Below are positions 5,072 to 9,305 of a stretch of 64,000 nt of DNA, in pieces. The DNA lies in NCBI GenBank assembly GCA_964057225.1, contig OZ059899.1, positions 7,378,001-7,442,000 of the forward strand, in the 5' to 3' direction. The translations under genes were made by a program, and so were the position numbers. The notes beneath the pieces are model-generated. The model did not search any database, was not told where the DNA came from, and worked only from the letters and a program-made list of their open reading frames with translations. The stretch's first letter is position 1, and the number at the start of each line of letters is the position of its first letter. This stretch comes from Auanema rhodensis. Lineage: Eukaryota; Animalia; Nematoda.

Positions 5072-6230
5072 TTAGCGTCTGCGATGAACCGTGCGCTTGA
5101 CCTTGGGCTTAGGAGGGAGGATGATACCATCATACTGAAAAAAATTAATTAATATTATCACATATCAACAATATGGTCAATCCTAATTGTCAATGCACCA
5201 ACGGCGCTACAAAACGAATAGGAATATATTGATGGAGCCGGGCTAGTTCTAAACATGCCACACAGCCTTAATATAGGAAACGGCAAAATGCGCAAAGCTT
5301 GTAACCTTTCACGGTCGCCAAGAGCACAAATTTTTGCATGACTGTAAACTTTTGAGTTTTCAGTTCAATTTCCAGCAGAAAAAAGAAAAGAAAAAAAGAA
5401 ACCTTCTGTTGGAACCACTTGACAGATTCCTCACGGCCGACTCTGTGGGAAACTCCAACGCGTCCAGGAGTACGTCTTCTCTTAGCAACACGACGTCCAG
5501 CACGGTCAAGAACAACATAGAAGTCCATACCATAGATACCGATAGATGGATCGTACTTGATTCCAAGATCAATGTGCTCCTGTAAATAATGTTAATCATA
5601 TGGTCTCTCCCAACTGTCCAGATGTCGTAGACACTACAGAACGATAAGGAATATATGAATAAAACCGGGCAAAATTAAATAAGCCACACAGCTTCTAATA
5701 TTCGACTTGGCGAACAGATCTACCTAAACCATAGCAGGCAAGAAGGGATCTATGCTTCGCAGAAGTGAAGATATTCGAAAACATCTAACCCCATCAAGTC
5801 GAAATAAAATTTAGTAATGACTAAAACAATTACCTGAATACCGAAACCGAAGTTTCCGGAATCAGAGAAGTTCTCCTTGTACAACTCGTATTCCTTAACC
5901 TTCAATCCCTTCTCAAGGATTTCCTCAGCCTTTGGGCCACGGACGGTACAGTGAACGGCGATCTTTTCGTTTCTACGAATACCGAAAGAACGGACGGTGT
6001 AGCGAGCCTTGGAGAAGACTGGAGTTTGCCCAGTGAGTTGTTCCAAAACCTACATTAACAAAAAAATGTATAGAACAAATTCAATAAATTAATACCTTGG
6101 CGGCTCTGGTAAGTCTATCTCCGGACTCTCCAACGCAGATGTTGAGGCAGAGCTTTTGGATTTTAAGCTCTCTCATAACATTCTTAGCCTTCTTCTCGCG
6201 GATTTCCGCAAGCTTCTCTGCGTCACCCAT
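5072..6230 (-). CDS. rpl-11: 60S ribosomal protein L11 (uL5); exons 6230-6096, 6049-5834, 5579-5403, 5134-5072
   Basis: [29 protein letters not shown]|[46 protein letters not shown]|[29 protein letters not shown]|[11 protein letters not shown]; all introns GT-AG. Confidence 0.97.
5160..5373 (-). ncRNA. U17/snR30 (SNORA73)-like H/ACA snoRNA, copy 1, in rpl-11 intron 3
   Basis: Minus strand: 5' domain closed by GGAAA/UUUCC, H box AUAUUA, internal hairpin GCUGUGUGGC..GCCCGGC, m1 AUAUUCCUA (5219-5227), m2-like UGACCAU (5173-5179), 3' basal stem CAAUAU/AUAUUG, ANA box AUA (5163-5165). About 214 nt. Confidence 0.8.
5587..5804 (-). ncRNA. U17/snR30 (SNORA73)-like H/ACA snoRNA, copy 2, in rpl-11 intron 2
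   Basis: Minus strand: 5' stem UUCGACUUG/CAAGUCGAA, H box AUAUUA, GCUGUGUGGC..GCCCGGU, m1 AUAUUCCUU (5646-5654), m2 AGACCAU (5600-5606), stem UCAUAU/AUAUGA, ACA (5590-5592). About 218 nt. Confidence 0.82.
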
Positions 6231-6464
6231 AGTCTACAATAGAATAAGATTATTAATTATTATAAAACTATTCTGTACATTGGAATAATGACATTAAAAC
6301 TTTGTAAATACGAATAATCACGATGAGGTATCACAACTTCAACTCATTACAAGCTAATAATCAAAAAATACGAAGATAACCTACAATAAAAACAAAAACC
6401 TTCGATAATTCAAAAAGGAATTTTAGGCAGAAGGCAAAATTTGCTAAATTCTGCTTTTTTGATG

Positions 6465-6475
6465 GATTACGGTAG
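6465..6475. promoter_or_regulatory. GATTACGGTAG motif in the divergent rpl-11 / HMG-CoA lyase promoter
   Basis: The exact reverse complement (CTACCGTAATC) occurs at 55663-55673, upstream of smc-4. Confidence 0.4.
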
Positions 6476-6604
6476 AAATAAGTACATAACATGCGCATCT
6501 AACCAAATTTTGGCACATTGCCAAGAGCTTATACCTTTTAATTGCATTAAAAGAATTAGTTTAATTTGATTCTTCCGGGTATATCTTTTATCATATTTTT
6601 TAAA

Positions 6605-7948
6605 ATGCGATCTTTTCTCCAAAGTGTACCGGTTAATATGCTCAAGTGTCGGTTTTCAACGAATGTAGGTTGCTGAAGTTGATTTTACTAAATTTTCCCC
6701 CAAATATAGATAAAACCATTTAAAGTTGTGGAAGTTGGGGCTAGAGATGGTTTACAAAATGAGAAGGTAAAATAAAAGTTATAATACGAAAAGCATTGGT
6801 ATATTTAGACTATTGTTCCTGTCGATACCAAGGTTTCTTTAATCAATAAATTGAGTGATTGTGGTTTAAAGGTCAGCAAAGGCTACATTGAATTAATATT
6901 CAATTTAATTTTAATTGAAGACTATTGAGGCAACAAGCTTTGTTTCACCTAAATGGGTTCCTCAAATGGCGGATCATAATGAAGTTATCACTAAGATAAA
7001 TAAGAAGGAAGGTGTATCATACCCGGTTTTGGTACCTAATCTTGCTGGTTTCAAAAATGCTGTATGTCTGTTTTGAGTTAGAAAAATAACATTGTAACTT
7101 CCAGTTAAAAAATGGAAATATTAGAGAAATTGCCGTTTTCGGGGCAGCATCTGACTCTTTTTCAAAGTTTGTGTTATATGATTGGTCGTATTGAATTATG
7201 GTATTGTAGAAAAAATGTTAATGCAACTGTGGAAGAAAGCTTAAAAAAATTAGAAGATGTTACTAAGGCTGCTGTTCAGGAGGGTATACTTGTACGTGGG
7301 TATGAAAAATCGGTTTTTTTTTCACAATGTATGTAAATATTTTAAGCTACGTGTCTTGTGTGATCGGATGTCCTTATGAAGGACCTACAAACCCAAATGT
7401 TGTCGCTAAAGTAACAGAATCATTATTATCTTATGGATGTTATGAAGGTTTTGAACTCTTTTATAATATGAAACCTTTGGTTTAGTTTCTCTCGGTGATA
7501 CTATTGGTGTTGGTAGTGCAGGTTCAGTAAGAAGAATGTTGGATAATGTATTGCAATCTGTTGCTGCTGACAAACTAGCTGTACATTTTCACGATACCTA
7601 CGGACAAGCTCTGTCTAATGTCCTCGTCGCTATTGAGGTTCGTAGTGTTATATATTTATATATAAATAATTATCAGAAAGGCATATACGTAGCAGATTCA
7701 TCCATTGCTGGACTTGGGGGATGCCCTTACGCCAAAGGGGCAACAGGAAATGTTGCAACGGAAGACCTGGTGTACTTATTGCACGATCTAGGCTTCGTCA
7801 CGGTATAAATTCTTTTTTACTTTATTTTTTACCGATATTATAGGGAATAAATCTTGGTAAGCTGATTGAAGTTTCCAACTGGATTTGTCAAGAAATGGGA
7901 AGGAAGAATAACTCTCGAGTAGCTAACGCATTATCAGCCAAGTTATAG
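6605..7948 (+). CDS. Hydroxymethylglutaryl-CoA lyase (HMGCL), multi-exon
   Basis: [96 protein letters not shown]; ends ..ALSAKL*. Confidence 0.93.
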
Positions 7949-8022
7949 CTTTTAGTTTTGTTAAATTTTTCTATGAATAAATTTTCTTTATAAACAACAA
8001 TTTATCATTAATAACAACGTTT

Positions 8023-9305
8023 TCACATAGCATCTTGCTGAGCCTTAAGCTGCAAGAGGAATTCCTTCTTCTTGGCGACACGTTCCTTTCTTTGCTCGTA
8101 TGTCAATCTTCTTGGTCCATAGACCTTTGGCTTCTCAATCTTGGCCTTCTTCTTGGCGGCCTCTGGGTTAGCTCTGATGGCAGCGTGAGCCTTCTTGTAC
8201 ATCTGAAAATATATGCTATATGGCTTTTCCTCTAGGTCATGGTACATATGTACTAAAAAACGATCAAGAATATATAGCATTTACCGGGCATCCCCAGAAG
8301 AGACGCCACACGATATACTAATATATGGTTGAACGAACCGAAATAACTCAGGCAGAGTTTTTCGATGTTTCGATGTGGTTCCAAGAACCTCAACCAAATA
8401 CCCAAAAGTGTCAAAAAATATTACCTCTTCAACTGAATCAGCATTGATTCCGTTCTTGATGAATTGAGAGAACTGACGTTTGTAGGCGTCATCGTCTTCT
8501 TCCTTAAGACTCTTCATGTACTCAGCAACGTGCTTTCCAAAAATACGATCGCGATGAGCTTCAGCATTGTATTCCTTAGATTCAGAATCGAATCCGAAGA
8601 AACGGTTCTCACTGGAAATTAGAAAATAAAACATGAAATATTATAATTCTTACCTGTGAGGAACTTCAATACCTCCATCAGCAACACCCTTCATGACAGC
8701 GAAGACCTTGCATCCAGTGGTGGTGCGGGCAAGTCCTACATCAAGGAAGGCCTTGAATGGAGCACGATCACCATCTTGCTCAACGTTGTAGTACTCTCCA
8801 TCAATCTTGAAACTAACAGTGAACGACAATAATTCAATAAAAAATTACCTCTTCTTGTCCCTTGTAGGTATCAGCAAGAGAAAGAACCTTAAGGTGACGA
8901 CGGGCCAAGAGAAGACCGGTGGCATAGGCAGCAGCGTAGTTGGTAAGACCAACCTAGTGAGAATTTAATTTAAAGTCTTTATTTTAAAAATTACCTTGAT
9001 TCCGTAACGAGGAAGCTCATGAGCGTAAGCAGAGGCGACAACGATATCTCCCTCAATCTTGGAATAAGCAATCTAAAAAAAACACAAAAATATACAAATC
9101 CTGAGGAAATACAAACCTGGGCGATGACGTCCTTGTTGGTGAAACGTACAATAAGTCTGTACTTAGGAGTATTGTACTTATTCTTATCCTGGACGGTTAA
9201 ACGCTTTCTGGCATAGTAGTCAGTCTTTCCTTCACGTCTACGCTTCAGCTTAACCTGATAGCGCTTGAAGTAGGCCTTATTTTTAACTACTTTCACGAGA
9301 CCCAT
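8023..9305 (-). CDS. rpl-5: 60S ribosomal protein L5 (uL18), multi-exon
   Basis: [107 protein letters not shown]. Confidence 0.97.
8207..8397 (-). ncRNA. U17/snR30 (SNORA73)-like H/ACA snoRNA, copy 3, in the last rpl-5 intron (8203-8424)
   Basis: Minus strand: 5' stem UGGUUGA/UCAACCA, H box AUAUUA, GUGUGGC..GCCCGGU, m1-like AUAUUCUUG (8265-8273), m2-like AAGCCAU (8220-8226), perfect basal stem AUGCUAUAU/AUAUAGCAU, AUA box (8210-8212). Confidence 0.75.

Follow-up and report, generated by a model that had tools for sequence, protein, structure and literature searches.

Two neighbouring ribosomal protein genes of the nematode Auanema rhodensis, rpl-11 and rpl-5, contain three introns that are far longer than their other introns, which raises the question of what these introns harbour. 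The genes are located in the 64-kb stretch of DNA analysed here (the window), on contig C7 of an assembly of 181 Mb in 112 contigs. An earlier note had proposed that the three introns encode diverged small nucleolar RNAs (snoRNAs) of the U17/snR30 type, i.e. box H/ACA RNAs with two motifs, m1 and m2, that pair with expansion segment 6 (ES6) of the 18S ribosomal RNA (rRNA). From family matches, predicted folds and the complementarity to the 18S rRNA of the same genome we conclude that they very likely carry three old U17/snR30 box H/ACA paralogs in sense orientation, in the following termed copies A, B and C.

Three long introns with U17/snR30-like sequences

The lengths which the earlier note had given for the long introns (268, 254 and 222 nt) are exact, whereas the short ones comprise 36-46 nt instead of the claimed ~45-50 nt, with one such intron in rpl-11 (6050-6095, 46 nt) and four in rpl-5 (44, 41, 36 and 42 nt). 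When the Rfam covariance model SNORA73 (RF00045) was searched, as had been proposed for verifying the U17/snR30 identity, it aligned over its full length (model positions 1-219) with each of the three long introns, always on the sense strand. The E-values amounted to 1.9e-5 for copy C, 1.7e-4 for copy A and 0.017 for copy B in a 3.7-kb search, and to 3.3e-4 for copy C and 0.0029 for copy A in the whole window, where these two copies represent the sole matches at E<0.01 among 4227 families. No other H/ACA family was detected in the long introns at E<=10 (Rfam, 3.7-kb search), and at gathering thresholds Rfam returned no match in the 64-kb window. At E<=1, the window yielded, besides SNORA73, one match elsewhere to the mir-297 family (19652-19709, plus strand; 28.8 bits compared to a threshold of 90, E 0.62), which is probably due to chance.

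The common motifs listed in the earlier note could all be located by script, in the same order and on the sense strand of each long intron, namely AUAUUA, GUGUGGC, GCCCGG, AUAUUC(C/U)U, UCGUU, U(G/U)UAG, (A/U)(G/A)(A/G)CCAU and finally ACA or AUA (Table 1). As a composite pattern, GTGTGGC..GCCCGG..ATATTC has just three occurrences in the 181-Mb genome, all of them in these introns, and none in the reversed control. With respect to m1, copy B carries the exact canonical motif AUAUUCCUA, while copy A reads AUAUUCCUU and copy C AUAUUCUUG. The spacers between m2 and the terminal box are exactly 7 nt long in each copy (AUGAUUA in copy A, AUUGUUG in copy B and AUAGCAU in copy C), and in U17/snR30 the m1/m2 element is invariantly located seven nucleotides before the ACA box, a spacing that abolishes function when cut by two nucleotides (Fayet-Lebaron et al., PMC2664660). 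Furthermore, the 3' strand of the upper stem of the 3' hairpin ends 15 nt ahead of the ANA box in all three copies, and the H/ACA rule demands 14-16 nt from stem to box (PMC7601244). Apart from these shared elements the copies have diverged considerably. Pairwise identity amounts to 55-60% over the full length, with values of 62-70% from the H box onwards and of about 50% in the 5' domain.

Table 1 Putative U17/snR30 copies, their parts and their host genes. Positions refer to the window; mature 3' ends are predicted to lie 3 nt past the ACA/AUA box.
Feature	Positions	Strand	Location, match or source
U17/snR30 copy A (putative), ~216 nt	5587..5802	-	rpl-11 intron 2 (5580-5833); SNORA73 29.0 bits
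Copy A, H box	5696-5701	-	motif script
Copy A, internal hairpin	5665-5689	-	motif script
Copy A, m1 AUAUUCCUU	5646-5654	-	motif script
Copy A, m2 AGACCAU	5600-5606	-	motif script
Copy A, ACA box	5590-5592	-	motif script
U17/snR30 copy B (putative), ~215 nt	5160..5374	-	rpl-11 intron 3 (5135-5402); SNORA73 21.8 bits
Copy B, H box	5269-5274	-	motif script
Copy B, internal hairpin	5238-5263	-	motif script
Copy B, m1 AUAUUCCUA	5219-5227	-	motif script
Copy B, m2 UGACCAU	5173-5179	-	motif script
Copy B, AUA box	5163-5165	-	motif script
U17/snR30 copy C (putative), ~193 nt	8207..8399	-	rpl-5 intron 5, the last (8203-8424); SNORA73 32.3 bits
Copy C, H box	8319-8324	-	motif script
Copy C, internal hairpin	8284-8311	-	motif script
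Copy C, m1 AUAUUCUUG	8265-8273	-	motif script
Copy C, m2 AAGCCAU	8220-8226	-	motif script
Copy C, AUA box	8210-8212	-	motif script
rpl-11 (uL5), host gene	5072..6230	-	exons 6096-6230, 5834-6049, 5403-5579, 5072-5134; 196 codons; open reading frame list
rpl-5 (uL18), host gene	8023..9305	-	six exons

Predicted fold and pairing with 18S rRNA

In minimum free energy (MFE) folds, the 5' domain of each copy consists of a closing stem with two hairpins and immediately precedes the H box. The layout is that of a box H/ACA RNA, since in every copy 0-2 nt separate the end of the closing stem from AUAUUA, and the ANA box follows the 3' hairpin. The succession of 5' domain, H box, small internal hairpin and 3' hairpin matches the description of human U17 and is apparent, for instance, in the MFE fold of copy B, in which a Y-shaped 5' domain is followed by the H box, a mini-hairpin and the 3' hairpin; the fold of copy C has a z-score of -3.3. 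In the internal hairpin, the outer stem, whose pairs vary among the copies, is followed by a UGU bulge, an inner stem of GGC/GCC and a loop that is variable.

The 3' hairpins of the three copies were aligned over 84 columns with four specified helices. In this alignment, 96.6% of the cells are paired and 7 pairs show changes in both partners. This pairing and covariation was equalled in 0 of 500 shuffles, a result that, with three related sequences, is not to be read as a formal probability, and shifting the pairing partner by 1-3 columns lowered the pairing to 28-53%. The basal stem, described earlier as covarying, indeed shows double-sided changes in 4 of its 9 pairs. Two of its pairs, 10-78 and 14-74, are represented by three different Watson-Crick pairs across the three copies, from which we conclude that compensated double changes occurred in at least two lineages. 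The sole indel of the 3' hairpin is located in the apical loop, and the 5' domains carry many indels. The upper stem (columns 21-24/60-63; in copy B, m1 at 5219-5227 and its partner at 5183-5186) is formed by the UCCU or UCUU of m1 itself, paired with an invariant (A/G)GGA.

The 18S rRNA gene of this genome (1754 nt, contig C8) contains the sequence ...AUGGAAUAAUAAAAGAGGACUUCGGUUCUAUUUAUUGGUUUAAG... and harbours in ES6 canonical versions of both target elements, rm1 (GGAAUA, 18S positions 768-773) and rm2 (UGGUUU, 801-806), which are separated by a 27-nt spacer folding as a hairpin of -4.5 kcal/mol. The comparison with the ES6 of the own species (GGAAUA / UGGUU), which had been suggested as a check, revealed complementarity of m1 and m2 for all copies. 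While m1 forms 6 bp with rm1 in every copy, including one U-G wobble in copy C, m2 forms 6 bp with rm2 in copies A and C, each with one G-U pair, and 5 bp with one G-U pair in copy B. The proposal that the motif variants still pair via G-U wobble thus holds for all copies, except that copy B additionally loses one m2 pair. The predicted m1+m2 duplexes amount to -12.3 kcal/mol for copy A, -11.5 kcal/mol for copy B and -9.8 kcal/mol for copy C, compared to -12.2 kcal/mol for the canonical motifs (AUAUUCCUA and AAACCAU). When the entire 18S rRNA was scanned, ES6 was for each copy the single site at which m1 and m2 both pair at a suitable distance. The internal hairpin and the UCGUU..UAG tract were also compared with rRNA for further targets; the best sites differ among the copies, and no consistent target was found.

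Copy number, relatives and alternative readings

To look for further copies, in particular one with the canonical m2, we built our own covariance model, R1, from the three 3' hairpins. In the 181-Mb genome, R1 identified only these three loci (copy B 98.9, copy A 97 and copy C 92.1 bits), whereby the genome searches score just the best candidates of a first pass. With SNORA73, the search of the whole genome yielded only copy C, as the best match, and one 63-nt partial match with an E-value of 6 (L002), which was not confirmed by R1. A canonical m1..m2 pattern had 16 matches in the genome versus 12 in the reversed control, none of which fit R1 or SNORA73. A looser pattern, which included GAC as a motif as well as the spacing of 7 nt, retrieved the three copies and three other sites, with 2 in the control; the three others were regarded as chance matches. 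One candidate (L037) with AAACCAU, 7 nt and ACA was rejected, as it has no basal stem. Taken together, R1 and the composite patterns revealed no fourth copy in the assembly, where a very diverged or unassembled copy could escape them, and the patterns, R1 and SNORA73 did not yield any U17 with AAACCAU, the canonical m2, there. Beyond this genome, a metagenome scan for the 3'-hairpin pattern returned a single contig, GC-rich and lacking a basal stem, which was judged a chance match. Among other non-coding RNA, the genome regions inspected show weak similarity to the box C/D family snoMe18S-Gm1358 (L023, 2943-3006, at ~6.53 Mb of contig C7; 31.5 bits, E 0.05) and contain transfer RNA genes (L012 and L023).

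We also retrieved the corresponding loci of relatives by means of exon-sized protein queries, i.e. the rpl-11 loci of Cylicostephanus goldi, Cylicocyclus nassatus and four Logan contigs, and the rpl-5 loci of two Logan contigs. Neither R1 nor the m1..m2 pattern, nor Rfam applied to L029-L032 and L034, detected U17 in these rpl-11 and rpl-5 loci. The host location is hence lineage-specific. The two strongylids do possess an intron at the position of the copy-A intron, which is 945 nt long in Cylicocyclus nassatus. In one Logan contig (L032), rpl-11 adjoins an HMG-CoA lyase gene as it does in the window, and U17 is absent; two rpl-11 introns of this contig are located at 2614-2787 (174 nt) and 3029-3251 (~225 nt, with a position shifted by 12 codons), both without U17. 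The same applies to an rpl-5 intron of ~690 nt of this related worm in L035 (~741-1429). Upstream of the rpl-11 exon sequence of L034 (264-333) we noticed a near-perfect palindromic hairpin with weak matches to several microRNA families (E 0.6-4).

Several observations weigh against an assignment to U17/snR30. The SNORA73 scores of 21.8-32.3 bits are all well under the gathering threshold of 74 bits, which renders the earlier designation as "diverged" apt. The gathering threshold is an operational cut-off rather than a biological trait, and as the SNORA73 model presumably contains mostly vertebrate sequences, low scores of nematode RNAs are not surprising, even though the matches formally remain under the cut-off. 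The search in other species yielded no orthologue that could supply independent covariation. The complementarity to ES6 is of limited statistical value, since 26-45% of shuffled 18S sequences also contain such a bipartite, wobble-tolerant site; its weight derives from the site being the homologous one. In the free RNA, the conserved GGA is able to pair with the 3' half of m1, so that the rRNA-binding motif would be partly closed. The terminal box is ACA in copy A, and AUA replaces ACA in copies B and C; the definition of the ANA box admits AUA, and Cbf5 anchors on its two adenines (PMC7075261). Finally, the canonical m2 AAACCAU is present in none of the three copies. According to a review from 2020, this m2 is found in each species from Tetrahymena to human, including the C. 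elegans U17 CeN96, and variation of the motifs is always accompanied by changes of the rRNA (PMC7601244).

Some of these points would be explained if the three sequences are U17/snR30 by descent, yet just one or two of them still work and the rest are decaying passengers of their introns, a scenario that we regard as unlikely. It would account for the m1 of copy C, which is weakened by the U-G wobble and has a duplex of -9.8 instead of -12.2 kcal/mol, as well as for the missing m2 pair and the AUA box of copy B, and redundancy of the three copies would permit decay. However, decaying copies are hard to reconcile with the compensated double changes that the pairs 10-78 and 14-74 require in at least two lineages, with intact H and ANA boxes in three of three copies, and with a 3' hairpin that remained free of indels save for its apical loop and kept its 7-nt and 15-nt spacings, even though the 5' domains are only ~50% identical. 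From the compensatory changes and the lack of indels in the 3' hairpin we infer that all three copies are functional.

The scores under the Rfam threshold could likewise indicate ordinary or orphan H/ACA pseudouridylation guides that merely resemble U17, but it is U17 specifically that has m1, m2 and the 7-nt spacing, no other H/ACA family appears at E<=10, and the architecture is not that of a guide, which makes this possibility very improbable. If the upper stem is formed, the loop is reduced to 2 nt + 6 nt and thus below the size of a guide pocket; if it is open, the next stem is located 23 nt from the ANA box, i.e. outside the 14-16 nt rule; and the 5' domain is branched and pocketless. 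Even less credible, to a degree that makes it nearly negligible, is a chance likeness, or a common intronic splicing or regulatory element instead of a stable RNA. Although AU-rich motifs such as AUAUUC are frequent in an AT-rich genome, the composite pattern with its three occurrences in 181 Mb and none in the control, the four helices kept by compensatory changes and the full-length matches of the covariance model all argue against it. We therefore retain the reading as three U17/snR30 paralogs.

Locus, predicted biogenesis and known U17/snR30 systems

The two host genes, which code for two proteins of the 5S ribonucleoprotein particle (5S-RNP), are neighbours on the same strand (5072-9305), and an HMG-CoA-lyase-like gene is located between them on the plus strand (~6600-7950). 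The proteins were searched exon by exon, whereby the rpl-11 exons matched the Pfam domains Ribosomal_L5 and Ribosomal_L5_C, the first exon of rpl-5 matched Ribosomal_L5e (E 4e-24) and its last exon Ribosomal_L18_c (E 8e-16). The splice sites of both genes were read from the sequence and are confirmed by the Pfam profile positions, which run on across the exon junctions. The best protein matches of the locus are from strongylid nematodes and, like the very short introns, the acceptors of UUUUCAG type and the 18S gene of 1754 nt, identify the DNA as nematode; none of the contigs appeared human. In C. elegans, rpl-5 and rpl-11 are presumably non-adjacent. Since snoRNAs are hosted by ribosomal protein genes in general, and since the arrangement is missing in the relatives, the choice of 5S-RNP genes as hosts gives no sign of function.

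Upstream of each RNA, the intron extends for 25-31 nt only, with coding exon further upstream, and no promoter-like motif common to the three upstream regions was found, which argues against an own promoter. By analogy with vertebrate U17, the RNAs are most likely set free when the spliced intron is debranched and trimmed. For copies C and A, the distance between the predicted 3' end and the acceptor is 4 nt and 7 nt, respectively (8203-8212 and 5580-5592), so that the acceptor (UUUUCAG/UUUACAG) would overlap with the tail of the snoRNA, and any branch point would be placed inside the snoRNA. In these two copies, assembly of the snoRNA-protein complex may compete with acceptor recognition.

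We infer that the three copies are expressed, processed from their introns, bound by protein and active on pre-rRNA. In such a pathway, the host gene would be transcribed by RNA polymerase II, and the core proteins dyskerin/CBF5, NHP2, NOP10 and then GAR1 would bind the two-domain RNA when it is still embedded in the intron. Once the intron is spliced out and debranched, exonucleases would shorten it to the protected RNA (~193-216 nt), whose m1 and m2 at the loop base of the 3' hairpin would pair in the nucleolus with GGAAUA 768-773 and UGGUUU 801-806 of ES6. As for yeast snR30, this pairing would keep the ES6 subdomain in a temporary fold and recruit UTP23 and its partners, which would permit the early cleavages that release the 18S rRNA, without any pseudouridine being made.

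The three copies apparently constitute the complete gene set of this nematode genome for U17, an RNA that is essential for ribosome assembly, a set which is overlooked at standard Rfam thresholds, and the R1 model combined with simple spacing rules could recover U17 in further nematodes. The novelty is modest and concerns m2: it is mildly unusual that all copies carry a non-canonical m2 while the rRNA partner is unchanged, with A-to-G changes that pair by G-U. The m2 variants represent a natural experiment on the pairing that is needed for the snR30-ES6 interaction. A more far-reaching idea, namely that the entire U17 supply of this lineage is tied to RPL5/RPL11 transcription and split among three paralogs of graded 18S pairing, none of them with the supposedly invariant m2, is in our view quite improbable. 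If it were true and functional, the choice of host genes would couple 60S and 40S assembly, and the m2-rm2 helix would tolerate, or even exploit, G-U wobble.

The family as such is already known in nematodes, and sense copies in long introns of ribosomal protein genes are a textbook arrangement. The U17 RNA of C. elegans is CeN96 (221 nt, AY948718; PMC7601244, Table 1), whose nucleolar signal is lowered by nop10 knockdown (PMC2943600). It is similar in length to the copies described here (221 versus 193-216 nt), it shares its m1, AUAUUCCUU, with copy A, and its end, as deduced from the published 3' primer, consists of m2, 7 nt, ACA and 3 nt, which is the spacing found here. In contrast to all three copies, CeN96 has the canonical m2 AAACCAU, a comparison that is made at the level of motifs. 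With regard to the hosts, U17 is encoded within every one of the six introns of the ribosomal protein S8 gene in Xenopus laevis and in the S7 gene in Fugu (cited in PMC7601244). As in the window, introns of ribosomal protein genes thus carry multiple U17 copies in sense orientation, and in Fugu the U17-bearing introns also exceed the usual short ones. The hosts of Xenopus and Fugu, however, are in each case one gene for a 40S protein, whereas here two neighbouring genes for 60S proteins (RPL11 and RPL5) are used, and the worm copies diverge from one another far more than those of Xenopus or Fugu.

Human U17a and U17b (SNORA73A/B, ~207 nt) share with the worm copies the two-stem 5' domain, the H box, the internal hairpin, the 3' hairpin with m1 and m2, and ACA. 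They differ in being hosted in introns of the non-coding U17HG, whereas the worm hosts are protein-coding, and in the upper stem of the 3' hairpin, for which the human RNA and the vertebrate consensus use a separate pyrimidine tract and the worm copies the UCCU of m1. Compared to human U17, the worm copies further deviate in m2 and in the two AUA boxes, and they score 22-32 bits. Yeast snR30, the archetype that has been defined by experiment (PMC2664660, PMC12095548), is three times as long (606 nt), independently transcribed, capped and equipped with a large internal hairpin, in contrast to the intronic worm copies. Nevertheless, its m1 and m2 at the loop base of the 3' hairpin pair with rm1 and rm2 of ES6, as predicted here, its m2 is placed seven nucleotides before ACA, and the distal 3' hairpin is conserved, in agreement with the three copies of the window.

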